DNA of 64,000 bases from positions 1 to 64,000 of the forward strand of contig JAIVFI010000031.1 in assembly GCA_025558095.1 (NCBI GenBank), given 5' to 3'. The DNA comes from Hyaloraphidium curvatum SAG 235-1. Lineage: Eukaryota; Fungi; Monoblepharomycota. The translations under genes were made by a program, and so were the position numbers. The notes under the pieces are model-generated. The model worked only from the letters and a program-made list of their open reading frames with translations. It was not told the origin of the DNA and ran no database searches. Of this stretch, positions 3,875-20,032 are shown in pieces (position 1 is the stretch's first letter; each line of letters opens with the position of its first letter).

Positions 3875-4470
3875 ATGAAGATTACGGCGCTCTATGTGCT
3901 CCTGGGCGTGGCCGCGGTGGCGGCGCTGCCCCCCGCAAGGTGCGGCCCTGTCGACGCTTCCGCGGCACCGCCCTGATCGTGCATTGTCCCGCGCAGCGCC
4001 GCGCCCTCGGACGCCCACGCGGTGTTCCGCCGCAGCTGCGACCTCTGCGCCCCCGAGGACTACTGGTGGGCCGATCGCCCCCGGGCGGTGGCGACCCTGA
4101 CCGCCGCCCATTCCCGCCCAGCGAGTTCGCGTACCCCGGCGCGCCCGCCGGCTCCGTCGCCTGCGTCAAGTACCGCTCGTCCGTGCACCTCTACCGCCGC
4201 TACGGCGACCCGTTCACGCAGTGCGGCACCGGCAGCGACTGCTGCGGGGCCTTCCTGTCGAGCATGCCGACCCCGCCGGCGTCCCTCCAGGAGTGCACCG
4301 ACGCGTGCAACGCCTACCCCGGCTGCGCGTACGTCACCTACGGCGACACAGCGGTCCCAAAGACGTGCGCCATGTGGTCCAGCTGCAACGAGTTCGAGGA
4401 GGCGTCGGGGATGTTTCCGGTGTACGCGCGGGGGCAGAACGCATGCCCGACGACAGCCACCGGCTGCTGA
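3875..4470 (+). CDS. Small secreted Cys-rich PAN/apple-like protein, copy 1 (2 introns)
   Basis: Signal peptide MKITALYVLLGVAAVAA; propeptide ending FRR; SLQECTDACNAYPGCAYVTY...CAMWSSC fits the PAN/apple CxxxC...C..(F/Y)...C pattern. Confidence 0.8.
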
Positions 4471-4559: not shown

Positions 4560-4682
4560 CTGCCCCGAATCCACGGCGGTGCCGGTGGCACGGTCGGCCA
4601 ATTTCCGCTCGCCTGCCTCATTGTGTCCTTCATTTCCCTCTGTCCCGTACGGAAAGGCTGCGTCCGAAGGAGGCTCCTTACC
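4560..4682 (+). repeat. Diverged, 3'-truncated copy A of a ~200-nt dispersed non-coding element
   Basis: GGCGGTGCCGGTGGCACGGTCG...GGCTGCGTCCGAAGG...TTACC is shared with 7289-7520 and 9970-10205. Confidence 0.65.
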
Positions 4683-4991
4683 GATCCCATTCAGCGCATG
4701 CCTTTGAACCCGCTGGGTTCCCCAATTTCATTGACCCGGTCTTTTGCCCCGGGATGCGGATGGATATCCGTGTAGCACTGGTTGAATGCATCCAAAAGCC
4801 GACGATGGGCGTGACGTGACAAGCGAAACCGCCGTCGAAGGGGTGCCCATGAACTCGAGGGTGCCCTTTTCGAGGGATGGGCGGCTGGGGACGGGGCGGC
4901 TCGTCAAGGCAGACTCCGCCGTCAGGGCACGACAAGGACACACCCATTCGCGCCTCTCCTGCGTCCGTCGCAACCATTTGCACTCGTCGAC

Positions 4992-5341
4992 ATGACGATC
5001 ACCGCGTATTGCATGTTCCTGGCCGGCATCGTGGCCGCCGTGCTCGATCGCCTGCGTGACGTACCGCTCCGCAGTCCACCTCTACCGCCGCTACAGCGAC
5101 TACACGGCGTGCGCCGGAGGCAACGACTGCGCTTGCGGAACCTACCTGGCGGTCGCCGGCACGCCCTCGAGCCCGGCCGACTGTGCGGCCTCGTGCAAGA
5201 ACAATGCCAACTCCAATTACTTCGCCTACAACGCGGATGCTGATCCCAAAGAGTGCGTGCTGTATGGGAGCGGCGTGGGGGGTGCTGAGGGCGCTGGGCG
5301 TACGGGTGGTGCGCGAGTCGTACTGCCCGCTTTGAGCGCCC
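4992..5341 (+). pseudogene. Chimeric relic: internally deleted PAN/apple gene (copy 2) fused to the last ~70 bp of the 7-TM gene
   Basis: Signal peptide MTITAYCMFLAGIVAAVL is out of frame with ACVTYRSAVHLYRRY...CAASC...ECVLYGS; 5270-5341 is near-identical to 7082-7153. Confidence 0.8.
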
Positions 5342-5640
5342 TGCATTCTGTTCGTCGATACCGGCCTCGTCAGGCCCGACAATGGCACTCCGCCCCGGCG
5401 ATACGTCCAGGCAGGTCTTGGTTTGGGGATTCGTCCACCGGCCCGCCTTTTCAGACTGTGGAGGCGCCCATTGCCGCCCCGCCAAAGAAGGCTGCTGCAC
5501 GAAAGGAGCCACGTGAAATGAGATCTGACCTAGTATGTGGCGACGATGCGCTGCGGATCCTTGCAGCCGACTCGGGGCACGGTTGGGGCCCGGCCACTGC
5601 AGATACAACCCTCCGCCACGTCCACCGGAACGCGCACCGA

Positions 5641-7156
5641 ATGACCCCGGAGGAGCTCCTCGCCGTTCTCCCGCGCATTTCCGCGCTCACCCCGTCGCTG
5701 CCCGGCCTCCCCGCCGAGTCGGACGCGGAAACCGTCGCCGCCGTTGCGCTCGCGGGGGAAACCCCGCGGTCTCCCCGCGACCTCGCGCGCGCCGCCGCCC
5801 GCGCCTCTCCCCTGCTCGGCTTCCTCGCCGCGATCTTCCTTCCCCTCGCGGCCCCGGGGAGGCGATGGCTGTACCTCTCGGCGCTGTGGGGCGCCGTTCC
5901 CGGTGTGCTGCTGGCAGTCTCCCTGTACCCCTTCATCGCGTCCGCCGCGGGCGCCGACGACCCCGCCGCCGCCTTCGGCACCTTGCGTATTGCAGTAGGC
6001 GCGGCTGGCATCGCCTGGTTCGACCTGGCGTCGTGCGCCACGGTCTCCCTCCTCGATTACGACGGCGCCACCCGTCCGCAGAACCACATGCTGACCGTGC
6101 TCAGCAGGTGGCTCGATGTCGCCGGCGGCGGACCCCGCTCGGAGCCCCTGGCGAAGGCCGAGGATGGCTCCGCCGGAAGTGACGGCCTTGCGGATCACAT
6201 GGACGGAGACCCGGACTGTCCATGCGCGCGCGAGACCTGCTCCGGACGCGTAGGAACGCACGCTGCCCTCTTCTTCCTTGCCGACTTTTGCGTCCGGCTC
6301 CCGCTCATCGTTCTTTACTGCGCCATACTGCCGATGTGGACCCCGGCCTTCTCCGCGGGCGGGGTCCTCTGGAGGACCTGGTGGGGCTGCCTCGTAGGCG
6401 CCTCGTCGATCGCCACCACCTTCCTCAGCGCCCTCACAGCCCTCGCCCTCGCCTTCATTGCACCCCGGCCGCCGGTCACCCGTCTCTCGGCGCGGCTGCA
6501 GCGCCGCGCCGTCTCGCTCCGCCTCGCCGCACTCGTGCGCCGGTACCGCGCTCTCCTCCTCTTGCCTAGCGACGGCACCGATCCCACGGAACGGCCCGTC
6601 CCGTACGAGCCGTACGAACCCCTTCTGCGGCACCTCTCGACCTCCTGGTCGGGCATCCGAAGCGGGAGCGCCAAGACAGTGCAACGCGTCGCCCTCGTCG
6701 GCCTCCTTCTCGTCCCCCCCGCCATCGCCAACCTCGCCCTCTCGTGCATACCCGCGTGGGAAATCGCGGCGTTCCTGTGGTGGGCCTTCTTTGTCCTGCA
6801 GTCCCTCCCTCCTGGACTACGCCGCGGCCAACGCCCGAATCGCCACGGCCGAGGCCGCGGTGCGCGCGGCGCGGACCGAGATCCTGTCGCTGCTCGCGGA
6901 AGCCCGCGAGTGCGGCGCGTGCGCCGACCCCGCGCGGGCGGATCGCGCGGCCGCCCTGGCGGCGCACGGGGACCGGCTCGCGGCGTTCCTGGGCGCCGCC
7001 GAGCCCGCGCGGCTCTTCGGGTTCGCGGTGGGGTACGGGACCGCCAGGACTCTGTTCGTGACGATGCTGACGCTGGGGTTTGCGGCGTGGGGCGTGCTGA
7101 GGGCGCTGGGCGTACGGGTGGTGCTCGAGTCGTACTGCCCGCTTTGGGCGCCCTAG
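5641..7156 (+). pseudogene. 7-TM receptor/channel-like protein (gustatory receptor-like/7TMIC-like), copy 1, frameshifted at ~6803-6810
   Basis: Seven hydrophobic segments; homologous to 10455-11891 (H..VL.RW, CxCxxxxC, EPY..L...LS..W, SC(I/V)PxW, AAANA.I, H.D.L.AF, R(L/F)xGFxVGY, W.VLR..GV...E..CP). A 4-bp CCCT duplication breaks the frame QSL-LDY. Confidence 0.8.
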
Positions 7157-7288
7157 CGGAGCTTCACCTCTCGGTCGCCTCGCGCCTCCGCACCCTCCTT
7201 GTCGCCGCCCTCGACCCCGCACGTGGAATCGGCCCGCGCCCGGCTGCGGGACCACGTCGCCGCGAAGTCCCATCTGGGTCGCATGGTT

Positions 7289-7520
7289 GCTCCGAAGCCT
7301 TGGCGGTGCCTGTGGCACGGTCGCCTCGTACAGAACGAAATTACCCCTCCCCCGTCTCCATGCGCCCTTCATCCCCTCCCGCGGAGTACAGGGAGGCCGC
7401 GTCCGAAGGGGGCCCGTTACCTGGATCAAGAAGTTCGACTCTTCACCGGGGTCCTCGCACCCCGGCTGAGCCGGGTTCCCGACCCTTGACGCCGTCTTTT
7501 GCTGTAGCCCGCCATTGGCC
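7289..7520 (+). repeat. Copy B of the ~200-nt structured non-coding element (SINE-like or Pol III ncRNA candidate)
   Basis: Colinear with 9970-10205; A-box-like TGGCACGGTCG, B-box GTTCGACTC, hairpin CCGGGGT..ACCCCGG, TTTT at 7497-7500. Confidence 0.8.
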
Positions 7521-8590: not shown

Positions 8591-9021
8591 TCATCCCGGG
8601 CACACCGTCTCGAGCGTGAACCCCACCCCCGCCCCCCGCAGCACCGACCACAACCCCACCGCCACGGTCAGCACCGTCGCCAGGAACCCGCGGACGACCG
8701 CGTAGCCGACCCTGAACCCGAGGAACCGCCCCTGCTTCTCCTCCGTCCTCGCGAACGCGTCCAGCAGGTCCGCGTGCCGCTGCAGGGCCGAGGCGACGGG
8801 CGCGGGGGGTTCCCCAGCCAGTAGGACGAGGATGCGGGTGCGGTAGGCGAGGTACAGCGAGGCCGCGCGGTCGATCTCGGCGTTGGCGGCGGCGACGGAG
8901 AGCATCTCTTGGGTGAACACCACAAGGACAGTGACCAAGAGAAAGACCATCCAGAGGGCGACGCAGGAGGAGGAGGCGGCGGTGACGGCGGCGCCGGGGA
9001 GCAGCGTTCCCATCAGCGTCG
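8591..9021 (-). pseudogene. 5'-truncated recent duplicate of the 7-TM gene at 10455-11891 (TM5-TM7 only)
   Basis: Highly similar to 10455-10885 in DNA and protein (TLMGTLL...GVGFTLETVCPG*); similarity stops abruptly at ~9021. Confidence 0.85.
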
Positions 9022-9261
9022 CGAAGAGACACTCGTGCGGCTGGTTGGAAGCCTTCCCCAATCGCGTATCGCACGAAAAAGTCTTCGTTCGCTTCGGAGC
9101 TTTTTGGAGACCCCTGTCCTCGTCTGCTGTGCAGTCCACCCAGCGGTGGCACATCCGCGTGCGGCACCTGGCTGGAATCGGCCAGTGTCCTTTCAGGGGG
9201 ACGCACGGAAAGACACCTGTCTGCGCTCCTCCACAGCTCCTCCGGCCGCCTTCCCGCCGGC

Positions 9262-9881
9262 ATGAAGGTAGTCGTTGCGTTTATGCTCCTCGCCGGGGCG
9301 GTAGCCGCCGCGCTCGTCCCCGCTAGGTGCGCCGGTCTTTGTTTGCTCCGCGGGTGCGGCCACTACAGTGATTGACCCGGCCACCGGCAGCGCCGCGCCC
9401 TCCGATGCCCACGCGGTGTTCCGCCGCCACTGTTCGCAGTGCAGCCAGGAGGATTTTTGGTGCGCTGGACCGCTCTCCTCTCCAATCGTGCTGCTTATCT
9501 TCGACACCGCCCGACCCCGGCCGCAGCGAGTTCGCGTACCCCGGCACGCCCGCCGGCTCCGTGGCCTGCGTCACGTACCGCTCGGCCTCGCACCTCTACC
9601 GCCGCTACGCCGGCTCCTTCACGCAGTGCACCGGAGGCAGCGACTGCTGCTCCGGCCTTATAACGAACAAGCCCAACCGGGAGAGCGCCGCCGCCTGTGC
9701 CGCCAGCTGCACGGCCGAGTCAGGATGCAAGTACTTCTCCTTCCTCGAAGACAACGGGAACCCGGCAAACAACCAGTGCGCCCTGTATTCGAGCTGCGAC
9801 AGCTTCAACGCGCCGTCGGGGCCGATTGTGGCGTACGCGATGGACCAGAACGCGTGCCCGACGACCGTCGGGTGCGGATAA
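9262..9881 (+). CDS. Small secreted Cys-rich PAN/apple-like protein, copy 3 (2 introns)
   Basis: Signal peptide MKVVVAFMLLAGAVAA; SAAPSDAHAVFRR, EFAYPG.PAGSVACV.YRS..HLYRRY, SAAACAASCTAESGCKYFSF...CALYSSC...QNACPTT.GC; same intron positions as copy 1. Confidence 0.8.
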
Positions 9882-9969
9882 CGGGGGCCAACCTCCTGCG
9901 TGTGGCAAGTCGTTGGGTGTACATGTACGATTCATGGAATGGGAGCGCTTTTGATTCGGACGCCTCGTC

Positions 9970-10205
9970 GCTCAGAAGCCCGGGCGGTGCCTGTGGCACG
10001 GTCGCCCAGTCCGGAACAAAATTACCCCTCCACTGCCGCCGTGTGCACTTGATCCCCTTTTACGGTGAGCTGGAAGGCCGCGTCCGAAGGGTGCCCGTTA
10101 CCTGGATCAAGAAGTTCGATTCTTCACCGGGTTACGAGAGTAACCCGGCTGAACCGGGCTCCCGACCCTTGACGCCGCCTTTTGCCGACTAGCCCGACTC
10201 TGGCC
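9970..10205 (+). repeat. Copy C of the ~200-nt structured non-coding element (best preserved)
   Basis: 5' GGCGG can pair with 3' CCGCC before TTTT (10180-10183); B-box GTTCGATTC in a GAAG/CTTC stem; perfect 9-bp hairpin CCGGGTTAC-GAGA-GTAACCCGG. Confidence 0.8.
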
Positions 10206-10454: not shown

Positions 10455-11891
10455 TCACCCCGGACACACCGTCTCGAGCGTGAACCCCACCCCCGCCCCC
10501 CTCAGCACGGACCACATACCCACCGCGACGGTCAGCACCGTCGCCAGGAACCCGCGGACGACCGCGTAGCCGACCCTGAACCCGAGGAACCGCCCCTGCT
10601 TCTCCTCCGTCCTCGCGAACGCGTCCAGCAGGTCCGCGTGCCGCTGCAGGGCCGAGGCCACGGGCGCGGAGGGTTCCCCGGCGAGGAGGACGAGGATGCG
10701 GGTGCGGTAGGCGAGGTACAGGGAGGCGGCGCGGTCGATCTCGGCGTTGGCGGCGGCAACGGAGAGCATCTCGTAGGTGAACACCGCGAGGAAAGTGACC
10801 AAGAGGAAGGCAATCCAGAGTGGGACGCAGGAGGAGGCGGCGGCCGTGACGGCGCCACTGGCGAGCAGCGTGCCCATCAGCGTCGTGATGCCCGCGCGGC
10901 CCAAGGACAGGTGCTCCAGTTCCGCGGGCCACGCTCTCGACAAAGCAAAGTGCAGGGCGATGTAGGGCTCGTCGGCGGGGCGGGGTGGGGGGGACGACGA
11001 GGTCTCCCTGGCTACGAGACGCGCCAGGACGTCGCCCAGCATGAGGTCCAAGGCGCGGCATCGCAAACGGCCGAGCAGGCGCGACATGGCGATGCTCGGG
11101 GTGTTGTAAATGGTGACAAGGTGGGTCGGCAGGGAGTAAACCAGCAGTTCGTTCACAAGGAAGAGGGCGACGAAGGTCGCGGCCCACGGGGTCGCCCGCA
11201 GCTGCCCGCCGAACGTGAATATCAGCGTCCACGTGAGCGAGAAGTTGGCAAAAAGCTCGGTGACCAGCGGGGGGAGCGGCGCGAGGCCGCGCAGGATCGC
11301 GGCCTGCCCCGGGAGAGAGCCGGAGCACGCATCGTCGGGGCAGGCGCACTGGACGTCCTCGGCGGATACATGGGCCACGAGACGCGATCCCCGGGTGACC
11401 AACCGCCGCCAGCGCACGAGCACGGCGAACGGATGCGCGTCCACGTTCGGCGCGGCCACGAAGCGCGCGGCCACGAAGCGCGCGGCGAGCATGTTCCACA
11501 GGCCTAGCGCGCCAAGCACGAGACATCCGCCGATCCAGAGGCCGGCCGACACCGTGTAGGCCGCCATGTGTTTCGTGCTGAACGTACCGGTCTCGCTGTT
11601 GAAGATCCACATCGCGGCAAACAGCGGGACGTAGGAGCCGGTCGTAGCAATGAGCCGAGCCCCGGTCCAGCGAGCGGCACCGGCAAGTGCGAGGTGCAGG
11701 CGTGTTGCGCCGTGCAGGAACGGGTAATCGGCGAGCCCGTCGAGGAGCGCCTTTCGGTCGAGCGCGTCGCCGCCCGCCTCGGCGTCGCGCCCCTTGGATC
11801 GCCCGCCGGGGCCCGGCATGCCGCCCGGAAAAAGGGCGTCCTCCTCCGCAGCGGACAGCCGCAGGGGGCCGGGCGGGGCGTCGCGGGCCAT
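10455..11891 (-). CDS. Intact, intronless 7-TM receptor/channel-like protein (7TMIC/GRL/DUF3537-like), 478 aa
   Basis: No signal peptide; 7 hydrophobic segments with short 1-2, 3-4 and 5-6 loops and long helical 4-5 and 6-7 loops; ends HADLLDAF...GRFLGFRVGYAVVRGFLATVLTVAVGMWSVLRG. Confidence 0.8.
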   Translation of the reverse strand: MARDAPPGPLRLSAAEEDALFPGGMPGPGGRSKGRDAEAGGDALDRKALLDGLADYPFLHGATRLHLALAGAARWTGARLIATTGSYVPLFAAMWIFNSETGTFSTKHMAAYTVSAGLWIGGCLVLGALGLWNMLAARFVAARFVAAPNVDAHPFAVLVRWRRLVTRGSRLVAHVSAEDVQCACPDDACSGSLPGQAAILRGLAPLPPLVTELFANFSLTWTLIFTFGGQLRATPWAATFVALFLVNELLVYSLPTHLVTIYNTPSIAMSRLLGRLRCRALDLMLGDVLARLVARETSSSPPPRPADEPYIALHFALSRAWPAELEHLSLGRAGITTLMGTLLASGAVTAAASSCVPLWIAFLLVTFLAVFTYEMLSVAAANAEIDRAASLYLAYRTRILVLLAGEPSAPVASALQRHADLLDAFARTEEKQGRFLGFRVGYAVVRGFLATVLTVAVGMWSVLRGAGVGFTLETVCPG

Positions 11892-12010
11892 GTCACTGAA
11901 CGCGGGTCCGGGTCGCGTTGGCGTCGTAAACAGGGTTCGACTTGTCCCCCCACAGCTTGCTCGAGGCGCGATGTCCGATCGGCCTGAGCCGACCCCGCAA
12001 TCTACAGAGC

Positions 12011-12618: not shown

Positions 12619-13315
12619 CGTGGGGGGTGCCTTTATTCCAGGAGCGGCTATAATACGGGTCCCCCAGGCCGTTGCGTCGCATTAGCCGTTCCAGGTGCCC
12701 CCTCGGGGAGCACGTCGTCCTTGTACGTGTGCGCCTGCAAAACTATCTCCGTCTCTCGAAACTGTCTGTAAAGTCGCTAGAGCTGGAAGTAGTCCTCGCA
12801 CTCTTCGAAGGGGGTACGGTCAAGGAGAAGCCCGTGACGACAGTTCCGGCCGAGTAGCAGTCGACCTTCTCGACGCAGGGCTCGCCCCGGACGATCTCTA
12901 GCTGGCGGGAGGTGGAAGGTGTGCGGACCATCGCGGTCATGCGGTGCTTGTTCCAGAGGACGACGTGGGCGAGTCGGCGAGCGAGAGGAAGCAGAAATCG
13001 TCGAAAGAGCGGAGGAGGATGTTCGGGGTTTTGAAAGCGCTATGGATGATGCCGTTGGCGTCACAGAGACGATCCGGTCCAATACGATGCGGGGATGCTG
13101 CGTGTACGTAGTCCAAAGAGCCTGTGCGAAGAATCCTTCAAGCCGTTCCCTAGCGCTTGTACCGCAACACCACGGCACGTGTCAACGCGTCGTTGAAATC
13201 GCGTTCTGCACCCTTGCACTTCTTGGGGCACCGGCTGATCGATTTTGCAGACGGAGCCATGGTGGGTCCAGCCAGCCCAGACGCGAAAATCTCCCGCGAT
13301 TGCGAATCGCAAGCC

Positions 13316-15207
13316 ATGGCCGGCTCCGTGGCCCGCGCCGCGCTCGCGGTGGTGCTGCTGGCGTTCCATGTCGCCGGTGCGGGGGCGGCAGAGGGCGCCC
13401 GGTGCCCGCTGCCGGCTTCGGCGAAGCTCGCCACCGCGTCTCCGCCGGCCGTCCTCCCGAAGCGAGTCCTGTCGCACCGCGACCGGATCACACCCGACGC
13501 GTTCTTCGACGTTATCAAGGAAATCGGATCGGGCGCGTTCGGCTCCGTGAGCGTGGCGTCGCTCAGGTCGTCGGCGCCGAGCTCGCTCGACCCGGCCAAC
13601 GGCCCGCGCCTCTTCGCGATCAAGGAGCAGAAGTACCCCAAGGACATCCCCGCGGGCGCGCCGGGGCACCAGGCGCGGACGGCCGCCCACGCCGACAAGA
13701 TGGAGCCGCACTTTGTGCGTGGCCTTCGCATCCGGTCGTGACGGTGCTTACCTGCCCGTGCCCGCAGATGTCAGTCGTCAACGGCGGCCCGTACCTGGTC
13801 CATTTCTGGGGCGCCTGGCGCGAGCAGACGGACGACATGAACAGCTTTTCCATAGCCATGCCCATCGCCAAATCGGACCTCGAGGCCGAGATCGCCGGCA
13901 AGGGCAAGTTCTTCCCCGCGGACGACCCTATCCCCGAGAACAAGGCGCGAATCCTCCTGGCGCAGCTTGCACTCGCCATCGGTCACATGCACTCCAAAGG
14001 AATCCTGCACCGGGACATCAAGGCCGGCAACATCCTGCTCGATTCCAAGCGACGCCCGATGCTCGCCGATTTCGGGTGCGCCATCAATGCGTCCTGGCCC
14101 CAGATAATGAAGGAGCACGTGGCGTTGGGATTCTGTGACTTCAGGATAGTGGCACCGGAGATTTGGTCGTTCGCGGAACGGCTGAGGGAGTTCCCGAACG
14201 AGGCGCCTTGTGGGTTAACCCCCCGACTGCCCGGGGACCTTGCCGTGCAACGGGCTTGACGATCCCCCCCAGTTGGCCGCGCATCCGACTGGTTCAGCTA
14301 TGGCGTTGTCGCCTTTGATCTCCTTACAAGGACGCCTTCTCCAAAGGACCCGACCGAAGGGGAGAGAAACGGGCCCTTCTCCATCCCAGGCTATCCGCCC
14401 GACTTCCACAAATTCTGGAGGAGCAAGTACGGCCAACAAGTGGGGGCGGATGAGTTCCTCGACGTCGACTACTGGAGGAACGCCGGCCTATCGTCGCAAG
14501 CAGGCGACCTCATCTTCAGGCTGTTGCACCCGGACCCGAGCAAACGCCTTGGCAGGTCCAGCCGCGACCAGCGCAAGCTGCAGGGTGCGTGAATGCCGCA
14601 TCCGCTCCCCACCGTCGGCGGCAGTGAGTCCTGACGCCCACCGTGCCTCCACACAGGTTGGCAGGCCGTGCTCTGCCACCCTTTCTTCGCCCCGCTCCAG
14701 CTGGAGCGACTGATCCGCGCTGGCGGCACGCAGGCCATGGAGCTCAACGAGCCCGTCAAGTTCAATACCCGGGACGGTCAGCCGCCGACACCTGGGGCGA
14801 GGGCCAACACGCCGCCTGCCAACGTGCCCCAGCAGGTCAGGGCAGCTGCCTCCGAGGCCGTGTTCGCGTACGGCTTTTCGGAGGAAGCGGATGGCGGTGC
14901 CAGCGCGTACCTCGCTTCCGACGCGGACGGGGGCGGGAGGTCCAGGCCATCAAGCTCCGGCAGCTCGGGCGGCGGGAGGAACAGGGGTTCCAGCGGGTCC
15001 GGCGACCCCTACCTCGCAGCGGCGAACGCCTACCTCGGCGCCGACGACGACGGCGGACAATCCGGGGGTTCAAACGACCCTTACCTTGCCGCCGACGACG
15101 GCGGCGGAAGATTCCGCGGCTCGAGGGGAGGCGGGCGCAACAGCGGCGGAAGGAGGAGCAAGCTCTGGAGGCGTCGCATCCTCGCGGAAGCACTTGGGAA
15201 AGCTTGA
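13316..15207 (+). CDS. AGC-like Ser/Thr protein kinase with an N-terminal signal-peptide-like segment and a Gly/Tyr/Asp-repeat tail (3 introns)
   Basis: IGSGAFGSV, FAIK, HRDIKAGNILL, LADFG, VAPE, SDWFSYGV, LIFRLLHPDPSKRLG, HPFF; N-terminus MAGSVARAALAVVLLAFHVAGAGA. Confidence 0.85.
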
Positions 15208-15511: not shown

Positions 15512-17388
15512 CTAGAGCCTGGCCTTGCTCGCCGCCTCGCGTTCCCGCAGCACCCTCCTGAGCACCTTGCCGTTCGAGTTCCTCGGGATCTCGTCCACGG
15601 CCACCACCCCGCCCCTCAGCCGCTTGTGCGCCGCCGTCCTCCCCGCCGCCCACTCCACAACTTCGACAGGATCAAACTTCTCCCCACCCGAGGCGGGCGC
15701 GGGGACCACGAACGCCCTCGGCACCTCCCCGAACCTGTCGTCCGGCACCCCGATCACGGCGCAGTCCGCCACCCGCGGGTGCAGGAGCAGCAAGCCCTCG
15801 AGCTCCGATGGCGCCACCTGCATCGCGTTGACCTTGATCAGCTCCTTGAGCCGGTCGGTGATGTACCCCCTGCCCTCGGCGTCGATGTACCCGACGTCGC
15901 CGGTGCGGAGCCACCCCGCGCCGGTGAATTCCAGCCCGTCGGGGCCGCGCGTATCCCGTTCGCCGTCGCGGAAGGCGATAGCGGCAAGGGAGGCGGCGGG
16001 GTCGCCGAGGTACCCGACGGAGCGGTTGGGACCCCGCGCCCAGAGCTCGCCTTCTTCCCCGGGGCCGAGGAGGCGGCCGTCGGGGGATACCACTATCATC
16101 TCGGAGGAGGGGGAGAGGGTGCCAACGCTGCCCGCGGGGTTGGGCGCGTCGAGGGTGCAGCGCAGGACCGAGGACATCTCCGTCATCCCTAGCCGCCGAC
16201 GATGGAGCGTCAGCGTGCCTGCGAGCGAGGAACTTTGCCGGCGGAGAACACCCACCGTATCCCTGCTTCACCTGCACCTCGCCCGGAAACACCCCAACCA
16301 GCGCCTGCTCCGTCTCGGCGCGCATCGGCGCCGCGCCGCAGAACACGTACCGCACGCTCGACAGGTCGTAGGGGGCGAGCTCCTCCCGCGGCATGGCGAT
16401 CAGGCGGACGACCACGGGCGGGACGAGGAAGAGCACGGGGGGGCGGTACCGCGAGACGAGGCGGAGGTACGGCTCGGGGGCGAACTTGGCCATCATGACG
16501 ACCGTCACGCGCTGCAAGGGGCGGCAGGTGAGCTTCACGGGCCTCGTTGCCCACCCAACAGACACCTACCAAGCCCAACAGCGACCCCATGAAATAGTTG
16601 CACCCGTACACGTGGGCCATGGGCACGAACGCCACTGCAGCCTTGGTTCCCCCAACGGGATCCCACGCCAGCGCCCCCCGCATCGTCGAGCCGATCTGCA
16701 GCGCCGCGGCGGTCTGGTTCGCGTGCGTCAGGGCGACGGCTTTTGGGGCGCCCGAGGTGCCGCTCGAAAAGGGGACGAGGCAGACGGTCCGCTCGGCGTC
16801 GGCGGGCGAGAGGGGGTTGAATCGGACGGGCGGGAGGGTGCGGCCGAGTTCGAGGAGGTCGGGGAGGGTGGGGGTGCCCGGTGGGACGGGCGAGCCGGGC
16901 GGCGGCCGCGAGGCGAGGATCAGCAGGGGTTTCGGGTTGAGGGGGGAGGCGGCGGGAGAGCTGACGTCCCACAGGTCCGCGTCGGTGACCACGGCCGCAG
17001 CCCGGCATTTCGCCAGTTGAGCGGCTACCTCGTCCCTCGTAAGGCTGGGAGACACGGGCGACACGGCATAGCCGGCCAGCACGGCCGCGTGGAACGCGAA
17101 CGGCACCTGCAGCGAGTTGTGCAGGTGCACGCCGACCACCGCGTCCCGCGGCAGCCCGAGGGTCTGGAGCGCCGCCGCCAGCAGCCACAGGTCCCTTTTG
17201 TAGTCCGCGTAGGTGACGGACGTGCCCGTGGAGCCGTCGACGTAGATCGGCGTGCGCGAATCGCGGTCCTCTTCGGCAAGGTCGCGGGGCTCCCCCGGGA
17301 CGGGCGGGGCCAGCCGCAGGGTCTGCAGCAGATGGCGGCGGTGTTCGCCGAGGGACGCGATGTCTATCGACGATCTGAACACCGTCAT
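15512..17388 (-). CDS. 4-coumarate-CoA ligase/luciferase-like acyl-CoA synthetase with PTS1 (-ARL)
   Basis: FSSGTSGAPKAV, QGYG/MTE, GWLRTGDVG, ITDRLKELIKVNAMQVAPSELE, IPRNSNGKVLRR. Confidence 0.93.
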
Positions 17389-18124
17389 GGCGAGCGATGG
17401 GGCCGGAGTTTGTATTGTTGTCGGGCCGACGCGTTGCCGGTCCGATCAGCCGTCGGTCTTGGTCGATCCAGAGCCGACTTGCGTAACCATACGAGGCGAA
17501 ATCAAAGACGGGGATGATGATTCGGGTCAAGAGGAAACACCCTCTGAGGGTTGGGAGCGTGGTAGCCCTTACTCGATGGGATGCGTGCGCCGCACGCCCC
17601 GTTGACCCCGTTTCTTTGCGCACGATTACTAGTGGAGAAAGGCTCCAACCGGCGGCACGAGTATCTCTATAATCTTGCTTGCATAGAATCTTGCTTGCAA
17701 GTCGGCCTCCGTTTACTTTTTTGGCGTTTGCCTCTTCCCTGGGTCCGCGGACAAGACATGTCCTGTTCTTCTGGGCGCGGCATCCAACGGTCTCGCAATT
17801 CGCGGTGCTCTACGGTTGTTTGCTGGATGCTTCCAATCGAATTGACCTTGAGCTACGGGGCCGGCTCAGGCTGATCGTACTTCGCAGCCTCGAGAAAGCT
17901 GCGGGGGACAAGTCGAGCCCGTGTTTAGTGGCCGCCAACCGAGCAGGGGACGACAGATATCGGTGAACGGCGGATCCATTGAGGAGATTTTTCGGTCGTG
18001 TGGATCGTTGCCCTGCTGACCGGACTGGAGTTGCGTCATCGTGGGGGCCCCCTCACCCGCCACGCTTCCCTTCTGGGACGCGCCGTGAATCACACCAACT
18101 CGCACACACAGAATCCCCACCAAA

Positions 18125-20032
18125 ATGACCCTTCGCGGCGCAAACCTGCGCCGCACCCTGCGGCGCGCATGCCGCCCCGAGCCCGGGCTGCTCCTCGCCC
18201 CGCTGCTCGGCCTCTTTGCCTTCTTCCAGGGCTGGCAGCCGCTCCAGCCCCTCTCGTTCGCCTGGGCGCCGCTGTTCGTCCTGATGGCGCTGCACGGCAA
18301 CGCGCTGACCTTTGCCGCGGCGTGGGCGGCGTCGGTGCTCGGCTGCTGGGGCTCGCTAACGGGGAGCTTCGGTTGGATCGCCGACGAAGAGGGGCCCTAT
18401 TTCGACTCGGGGGGGCTCACGCTGTCGTTCCTCCTCGGCATGCTTGCAGCCTCCGGCATGGCCATCGTAGTTTTACTGAACATGCTAGTGGTGCGGGGCA
18501 CAGAACGCTGGGCATCGGCCCTCTGGTTCCGCATCCTCTTCTATCCGCAAGCTGCCACCGGGATGTATGCCATCCTGGCCGCCTACTCACCCCTCGGGCA
18601 GGCCGGCTCCCCCGCCGAAACCGCCTTCGCCTCGCGCGACCTCGTCGTCGGATCTTTGTACCTCGGCGGCGTGTCGCTGGCCAACCTGGCCGTGCTCGGC
18701 GCGGCGTCGCTGGCGGCCTACGTGGTCGAGAAGGCGTGGTTCGACCTCGTGGAGGAAACCACCAGCGATGGGGTCGAGCAAAGCATCGCGGTGGAGGCCG
18801 ACGCCAAGCAGGTCGATCTCGCTGATGCCGGCGTTATTGTTGCCGTCGCCGACTCGGTCGAGCGCGACCTGCCGCAACCGGAAGCCAGCGCCGAAGTTCA
18901 AACACCCCTCAAGACCAGGTGGGGATCGGAGTCGTTCCGCCGGGCAACAACCAAGCTCGCCGCCTTCGTCACCCACCCGATCTCGGTCCCGCTGACCATC
19001 CTCCTCGTCGTCGTCACAACGGGCGCGGTGTTCAACATGGAGCTCCCCCTCGTCTTCTACCAGAAGCAGGCCTTCAGCGCGCACTCGACCGATACCTTCT
19101 CCTTCGGCTGCATGGCGATCCAGTCGCGGACGGACGAGTTCTTCCTCTCGGAGGCGGCCAAGATGGCCGCGCGGGGGACGCGCTTCATCACCACCTCGGA
19201 GCTGGGCCTCGGCGCGTCCGTCTCGGCTGCCAACGAGACGGCGTGGCTCGCCAAGTTCCAGGACTTTGCCCGCAACGCCACCGCGTACCTGGGGATCGGC
19301 TACCTCGTCGCGATCGACCCCGAGGACCCGGAAGCAAACTACAACCGCTTCACAACCATCGCGCCCGACGGCCGCGTGCTCGCCAAATACGACAAAAACA
19401 GGCCGGTGCCCCTCTCGGAGGACACCTTCGTCGTCGCCGGCGCCTCCCCGCCCCCCGTGATCGAGCTGGACCCGCGCGTGCTCAACCCCTCCTCGAACCT
19501 CTCCCGGCCCCTCAGGGTGCTGGTCGCCACCTGCTTCGACGGGGAATTCCCGTCCCTGCTGCGCCCCCCCGCCCTCGCAGCGGGCGGCGCCGACCTCTTC
19601 CTGCACCCCACGTGGCTGTGGGGGTCCCCCTCCACGCTGATCGACAGGGTTTACCCCTACCGCGCCGTCGACCTGGGACTGACGGAGCTCCGCTGCGCGA
19701 GCGGGGGCACGTCGGGTGCCTACGGCCCGCTGGGCACCGCGGCGGCGGCGTACAGGACGCACAGGGACACGGTGCTCGATTTCGAGGTGCCGCTGGTGCC
19801 GGGCGCGGGGTCGGTCTATTTGCACACGGGGGATGTGGTGGGGTGGGCGTGCCTGGGGGTCGCGGGGGCGCTGCTGATCTACGTGGGTGTGGGGAGGTGG
19901 GCGCCGTTTGGCAGGGGGTTGGCAGAGTTCAGGGTGTGGGGGAGGGTGAGGCGCTACCGGACGGCGGAGGCGGCGGGGGCGCGGATGGAGGAGGAGAGGG
20001 TGGCGGACGTGCTCGCGATGGGCTGTACATAG
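18125..20032 (+). CDS. Apolipoprotein N-acyltransferase (Lnt)-like membrane nitrilase-fold protein, intronless
   Basis: Multi-TM N-terminus plus a CN-hydrolase domain with an E-K-C triad (TSEL, YDKNRPVP, TCFD), YNRF, RCASGGTSGAYGPLG, and SVYLHTGDVVGW before a final TM. Confidence 0.85.
   Translation: MTLRGANLRRTLRRACRPEPGLLLAPLLGLFAFFQGWQPLQPLSFAWAPLFVLMALHGNALTFAAAWAASVLGCWGSLTGSFGWIADEEGPYFDSGGLTLSFLLGMLAASGMAIVVLLNMLVVRGTERWASALWFRILFYPQAATGMYAILAAYSPLGQAGSPAETAFASRDLVVGSLYLGGVSLANLAVLGAASLAAYVVEKAWFDLVEETTSDGVEQSIAVEADAKQVDLADAGVIVAVADSVERDLPQPEASAEVQTPLKTRWGSESFRRATTKLAAFVTHPISVPLTILLVVVTTGAVFNMELPLVFYQKQAFSAHSTDTFSFGCMAIQSRTDEFFLSEAAKMAARGTRFITTSELGLGASVSAANETAWLAKFQDFARNATAYLGIGYLVAIDPEDPEANYNRFTTIAPDGRVLAKYDKNRPVPLSEDTFVVAGASPPPVIELDPRVLNPSSNLSRPLRVLVATCFDGEFPSLLRPPALAAGGADLFLHPTWLWGSPSTLIDRVYPYRAVDLGLTELRCASGGTSGAYGPLGTAAAAYRTHRDTVLDFEVPLVPGAGSVYLHTGDVVGWACLGVAGALLIYVGVGRWAPFGRGLAEFRVWGRVRRYRTAEAAGARMEEERVADVLAMGCT

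Follow-up and report, generated by a model that had tools for sequence, protein, structure and literature searches.

Receptor-like gene copies and their neighbours

In the 64,000-nucleotide window analysed here, from the genome of the tiny freshwater fungus Hyaloraphidium curvatum, a gene for a predicted seven-helix membrane protein occurs in four copies, of which one is intact, one carries a frameshift and two are fragments. The copies and the features around them are as follows.

10455..11891, minus strand: copy A, an intact single-exon gene of 478 aa with a predicted seven-transmembrane ion channel (7TMIC) fold, insect OR/GR-like (open reading frame and predicted structure)
8591..9024, minus strand: copy B, a 5'-truncated duplicate of copy A (TM5 to the end, the 3' third), 92% identical to A in nucleotides
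about 5641..7156, plus strand: copy C, a divergent, near-full-length paralogue (about 29% identical to A) with a frameshift near 6805
5270..5342, plus strand: copy D, a 73-bp remnant, 96% identical to the last 73 bp (3' end) of copy C
3876-4470, 4992-5280 and 9263-9881, plus strand: three small, probably secreted Cys-rich PAN-like genes (weak PAN matches)
7277-7520 and 9958-10205: a 245-bp non-coding repeat, its two copies 81% identical

The translation of copy A runs through 478 residues to its stop with no internal stops. The original prediction put the number of copies, whole or partial, at four in 7 kb; this is true if remnant D is included, and the four then lie within 6.6 kb. Copy B differs from copy A by 17 synonymous and 13 non-synonymous codon changes. 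The frameshift of copy C falls where TCCC is repeated in a short tandem run (near 6803-6810); as protein coverage continues across it without a gap it is not an intron, and copy C is either a pseudogene or the product of an assembly error. Copy D is fused to the middle PAN-like gene, which is truncated. The PAN-domain matches (E 0.008-0.02) fall short of the cut-off, and at least 54 matches to this family occur genome-wide. For the 245-bp repeat we found no third copy in the genome and no Rfam match, and it was probably carried along by local duplication; by eye, a shorter stretch near 4585-4730 resembles it. An 85-bp inverted dispersed repeat (11917-11997 and 17856-17939, 84% identical) lies directly upstream of the start codon of copy A. 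The neighbouring genes, read by eye, encode a protein kinase (13157-14760), an acyl-CoA ligase-like protein (15512-17388), a membrane nitrilase/acyltransferase-like protein (18125-20032) and a cytochrome P450 (21063-22871).

The nearest relatives of copy A are hypothetical proteins of H. curvatum; word-index searches returned only three or four of these, at a sensitivity too low to judge other taxa. Pfam gave no match for three window proteins or nine paralogues, including to DUF3537 (PF12056) and PHTF1-2_N (PF12129), and a search of the genome with these two models was blank and uninformative, as its control was also silent. PDB sequence profiles of the full-length protein and of its C-terminal part gave chance matches only (opsin, E 0.07 over 51 columns; aquaporin, E 8.8). 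Neither Pfam, phmmer nor PDB profiles link the protein by sequence to known 7TMICs. The family is invisible to Pfam and appears in the NCBI annotation as hypothetical proteins only.

Topology and predicted structure

In copy A alone TM1 and TM3 are weak (KD about 1.0-1.3), but hydropathy averaged over a family alignment of 128 members has seven clear peaks (residues 76-97, 109-130, 202-229, 235-259, 334-352, 355-379 and 445-466), and the seven hydrophobic helices foreseen in the original prediction recur in two AF2 models, of copy A and of the paralogue P0133. On copy A the segments map as follows, all on the minus strand.

11589..11666: TM1 (residues 76-101; family profile and model)
11499..11573: TM2 (107-131; family profile and model)
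11325..11372: cytosolic loop-1 motif H174-x4-D179-x2-C182-x-C184-x4-C189 (in the family, H-x3-D-x2-C-P-C-x4-C)
11214..11291: TM3 (201-226; family profile and model)
10998..11189: TM4 with a long basic cytosolic extension (235-298), anchor-domain-like (helices 235-263 and 267-298 in the model)
10833..10967: TM5 (332-353; family profile and model) with the cytosolic helix that leads into it (309-328)
10827..10829: C355, which is invariant (100%; conservation) and lies in extracellular loop 3
10680..10820: TM6, a single 47-residue helix (358-404) reaching into the cytosol, with invariant N382 (model and conservation)
10617..10667: TM7a (409-425), cytosolic (model)
10572..10595: beta-hairpin linking TM7a to TM7b (strands 434-435 and 438-439; G437 in 95%; model, also in P0133)
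10497..10568: TM7b (442-465), the best-conserved TM and candidate pore helix (column identity and helical-face analysis)

Inspection of residues 1-75, which are hydrophilic or amphipathic, agrees with the claimed lack of a signal peptide, and the C-terminal series H-x-DLL-x-AF, GRFLGFRVGY and long TM is present at residues 418-465. Loops 1-2, 3-4 and 5-6 are very short, as claimed, averaging 5, 8 and 4 residues, against inner loops of about 76, 74 and 62, so that the intracellular loops are longer than the extracellular ones. Lys and Arg are scarce in the outer loops and the C-tail (0.1-0.4 per segment), while the N-terminus and loops 2-3 and 4-5 have 8-9 of them and the stretch from TM6 to TM7b about 7. 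By the positive-inside rule this distribution predicts the N-in/C-out topology originally proposed, which is the opposite of that of a GPCR. The extensions expected after TM4 and TM6 appear in the model as helices 235-298 and 358-404, which together with 309-353 form long TM4-6 helices of the anchor type; R275 and R279 in the TM4 extension are conserved in at least 90% of members. The split TM7 with its beta-hairpin likewise emerged in both independently predicted models. Ahead of TM1, amphipathic helices at 46-73 lie inside the range aligned to the N-terminal (S0) region of ORs and GRs, the VIA aligned ranges beginning at model residues 42-55 and chain residues 1-16.

The loop-1 motif is conserved at 98% for His, 93% for Asp and 98, 98 and 99% for the three Cys (n=128), which makes it a candidate cytosolic metal site. 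C476 (10464-10466) is conserved at 98%, and the model has strands at 355-357 and 469-471; C355 and C476 probably form an extracellular disulfide. The word 'disulfide' is absent from PMC9998090, and no such motif was found in the 7TMIC literature examined; the His/Asp/Cys3 motif and the probable disulfide are specific to this family.

A genome-wide family

A genome search with a single protein listed at least 97 matches from the 89 of 675 candidates that were scored, and a global library gave 293 clusters at 50% identity (E up to 0.001). The codon pattern for H-x3-D-x2-C-P-C occurs 312 times in the genome, against 2 in a reversed control and about 4 expected; a variant without the Pro adds 105 occurrences, against 30 in the control. 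Over background this suggests about 385 motif-bearing loci, and since 108 of 128 aligned proteins have the motif at this spacing, some 450 loci in all; we estimate the family from these counts at roughly 400-450 loci. The local expansion originally noted thus stands for the four copies in the window, but its scale was far underestimated, as the expansion is genome-wide and in the hundreds.

Twenty new pattern loci were sampled, of which 19 were clear members and one was weak. Five are single uninterrupted frames, and most of the others span the protein from end to end, usually broken by a gap or two of about 45-75 nt, the longest reaching about 145 nt; reading the pieces of each locus separately, we found candidate GT and AG sites close to most of the gap junctions. 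Three loci agree with annotated spliced proteins, and three contain stops in frame (one or two) or a doubtful junction. Given the end-to-end coverage and the GT/AG sites, most family loci look like potentially intact genes. The median pairwise identity in the family is 27%. Some annotated members are long (P0091, with 788 aa, P0016 and P0077) and may be merged gene models; the C-terminus of P0091 is a SIMPL/DUF541 domain (E 4e-32).

Among the best 150 of the 293 matches listed, five come from outside H. curvatum: three from Logan run SRR26194948 (L052-L054) and two from JGI metagenomes. The four outside members with DNA have a GC content of 53-56%, and one of them lies beside genes that share 42-56% identity with H. 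curvatum, their sole named match, which identifies the source organism as a relative. A quick maximum-likelihood tree, in which three of the five outside rows are partial and two are long branches, places P0112 with P0019, P0084 with P0039 and P0145 with the group of copy A (SH-aLRT 99 each). The outside rows are scattered over separate subfamilies, and the radiation therefore appears to be old, having begun before H. curvatum split from these uncultured relatives. The Hyaloraphidium-like organism in SRR26194948 has a GC content of 53-55% and contigs reaching 48 kb. A third lineage is suggested by P0156, another Logan protein (55% identical); both would be useful for comparative work.

At 67% GC the H. 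curvatum genome offers many long spurious ORFs, and the family could in principle consist of such shadow frames or of a mobile-element repeat. This reading is effectively refuted, and its probability negligible: Cys, Asn and His residues are invariant in hundreds of copies only 27% identical to each other, short GT-AG introns lie at varied sites, members are annotated as genes in NCBI, and others occur in organisms of 53-56% GC.

Another possibility is that the repertoire serves non-self or microbe recognition, as an immune-like receptor set that sets off an ion flux or the death of the cell and may have secreted PAN-domain proteins as partners. Such a role would suit a large family with fast birth-and-death and broken copies, and the three PAN-like secreted genes interleaved with receptor copies in the window. 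The subfamilies, however, are old and common to distant relatives, and the adjacency does not extend to the genome at large: one of 48 other receptor loci has a PAN-like match in its flanks, and one of nine PAN loci has a receptor close by (short flanks), so that a general pairing is not supported. We consider an immune-like function quite improbable.

Fold assignment and candidate pore helix

The published criteria for 7TMICs include seven TMs, N-in/C-out topology, long inner loops, a TM4-6 anchor and a split TM7 (Benton & Himmel 2023, PMC9998090; Himmel et al. 2023), and further a re-entrant TM0/S0 helix, a link in a PSI-BLAST network and a tetramer with a TM7b-lined pore. By hydropathy, charge distribution and predicted models the H. 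curvatum family has the first five of these features, and it is negative in the sequence tests that define GRs, DUF3537 and PHTF more narrowly. The top structural matches of the copy A model are insect OR, GR and Orco structures and DUF3537 and PHTF models, as expected for the 7TMIC-type protein, rather than GPCR, of the original prediction; no transporter is among the best structural matches. The matches cover the whole chain with moderate Z and high rmsd, and the insect OR/GR structures are 6-12% identical to copy A in the structural alignments. Those values, the lack of sequence homology and the weak local match to opsin would also be expected of a convergent seven-helix bundle unrelated to 7TMICs, such as a GPCR-like receptor or a novel transporter. 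Against convergence stand the whole-chain coverage, the N-in charge bias, the absence of any GPCR from the 50 entries of every VIA structure list, and a split TM7 with hairpin and anchor extensions that fit the published 7TMIC checklist in two models. Convergence is thus a very improbable explanation, and copy A in all likelihood has the insect OR/GR fold, as judged from predicted models. TMEM39 (PF10271), missing among the structure rows, is an ESM Atlas language-model neighbour of copy A and P0133 (0.93 and 0.94), beside DUF3537; we found no paper linking it to PHTF.

In 7TMICs generally TM7b is reported as the most conserved TM, and likewise here its column identity is 0.44, compared with 0.17-0.22 for TM1-6. 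Positions 443, 447, 451, 454, 458, 461 and 465 fall on a single helical face, with a small or polar residue in 72-99% of members, a pattern compatible with pore lining. The end points of several structural alignments set V462 on F444 of BmGr9, L473 of Orco and V468 of MhOR5, which are outer gates (PMC11100771). This register aligns T454 (95%) with T436, and position 447, where Thr predominates, with T429, giving two hydroxyl rings; other alignments are shifted by two to four residues, and all are given as end points only, so the register against the insect channels is tentative. If it is right, the insect GR motif TYhhhhhQF becomes roughly T-V-hhhhh-[SGT]-[VIL], with its Tyr and Gln replaced and Gly/Ala at the inner gate. 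Conserved Arg residues (446 and 464) lie at the two ends of TM7b; in that register, with the replaced Tyr and Gln and the Gly/Ala gate, selectivity and gating may differ from those of insect channels. The literal motif was found anywhere in only 2 of 128 members, and we do not class the family as GRs.

A model for the function of the family

The fold and the pore-helix pattern together lead us to infer a ligand-gated channel function for the family, which we favour with slightly better than even confidence. In this model copy A would be one subunit of a seven-TM ion channel, in a family of about 400-450 loci. By analogy with the solved insect channels, four subunits would join through a cytosolic TM4-6/TM7a anchor, and their four TM7b helices would line a central pore with Thr rings at 447, 451 and 454 and an outer hydrophobic gate near V462. 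As in BmGr9 and MhOR5, the pore would open when a small molecule occupies the variable TM1-6 bundle. The His/Asp/Cys3 loop is likely to bind a metal ion, in a structural or a regulatory role. Each paralogue would have its own ligand range, adding up to a large chemosensory repertoire. As H. curvatum has no flagella (PMC8371127), the channels would act on development or metabolism, the repertoire steering germination, growth or sporulation instead of swimming.

Proteins of the same fold might instead do something other than sense outside chemicals, acting as leak or solute channels, residing in the ER or vacuole, or being gated from the inside by metal or redox through the His/Cys loop. The invariant cytosolic motif suits gating from the inside, and the small residues found where GRs have their inner gate and Gln, the Arg at both TM7b ends and TMEM39 among the language-model neighbours suit a non-sensor; the closest predicted models, moreover, are PHTF and DUF3537 clusters, which the family would on this reading resemble more. 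Housekeeping channels, however, need no 400 or so paralogues at such low median identity, and the sequence variation is centred on TM1-6, the ligand-pocket region of ORs and GRs. We therefore regard a non-sensory role as rather unlikely, and retain the ligand-gated receptor model.

Comparison with known 7TMICs

We compared the family with the insect receptors BmGr9, DmGr43a, DmGr64a, MhOR5, AaegOR10, AgamOR28 and Orco. Unlike insect ORs and GRs, it has a loop 1 of about 75 residues with the His/Asp/Cys3 motif, and a conserved Cys pair in EL3 and the C-tail. The plant and algal DUF3537 proteins (PF12056) are Class-A 7TMICs; a predicted DUF3537 model gives TM-scores of 0.58/0.63, and DUF3537 is a language-model neighbour of copy A (0.91). 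Both families have a G-F hairpin before TM7b and an unrecognisable GR motif, but plant DUF3537 families have 4-12 members (PMC7746228), compared with hundreds here. PHTF1/2, of Class B (TM-score 0.54 over 359 residues), shares an enlarged first intracellular loop; it differs in that this loop is far longer (the cluster is 838 aa) and in being encoded by conserved low-copy genes.

Among fungi, 7TMICs are recorded in Chytridiomycota and Blastocladiomycota generally. The chytrids Spizellomyces punctatus and S. palustris, from an early-diverging lineage, have one GRL1 gene per species (PMC7746228); GRL1, which we compared by description only, is not among the named matches in the best 150 of 293 listed. 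Hyaloraphidium is mentioned neither in PMC7746228 nor in the paper on Chytridiomycota and Blastocladiomycota 7TMICs, and a literature search whose scope excluded subscription journals and supplements yielded no published description of the H. curvatum family. Fungal 7TMICs are thus already known, and what is new here is the scale of the expansion and the His/Cys loop.

Tentatively, and with somewhat less than even confidence, we propose that a chemoreceptor repertoire of insect scale, about 400 ligand-gated seven-TM channels with a family-specific cytosolic metal-binding loop, arose independently in a lineage of non-motile fungi, in subfamilies kept since before H. curvatum split from relatives only about 55% identical in housekeeping proteins. 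If true, no ionotropic chemoreceptor repertoire of the 7TMIC type would have been shown outside animals before. Function in 7TMICs is known almost solely for insect proteins (10.1101/2023.08.30.555482). With its hundreds of divergent members, H. curvatum, which can be cultured, would provide a second, independent large radiation that bears on the ancestral function of the superfamily, on whether the fold already served as a ligand-gated channel before animals and on whether receptor repertoires expand again without neurons or swimming.
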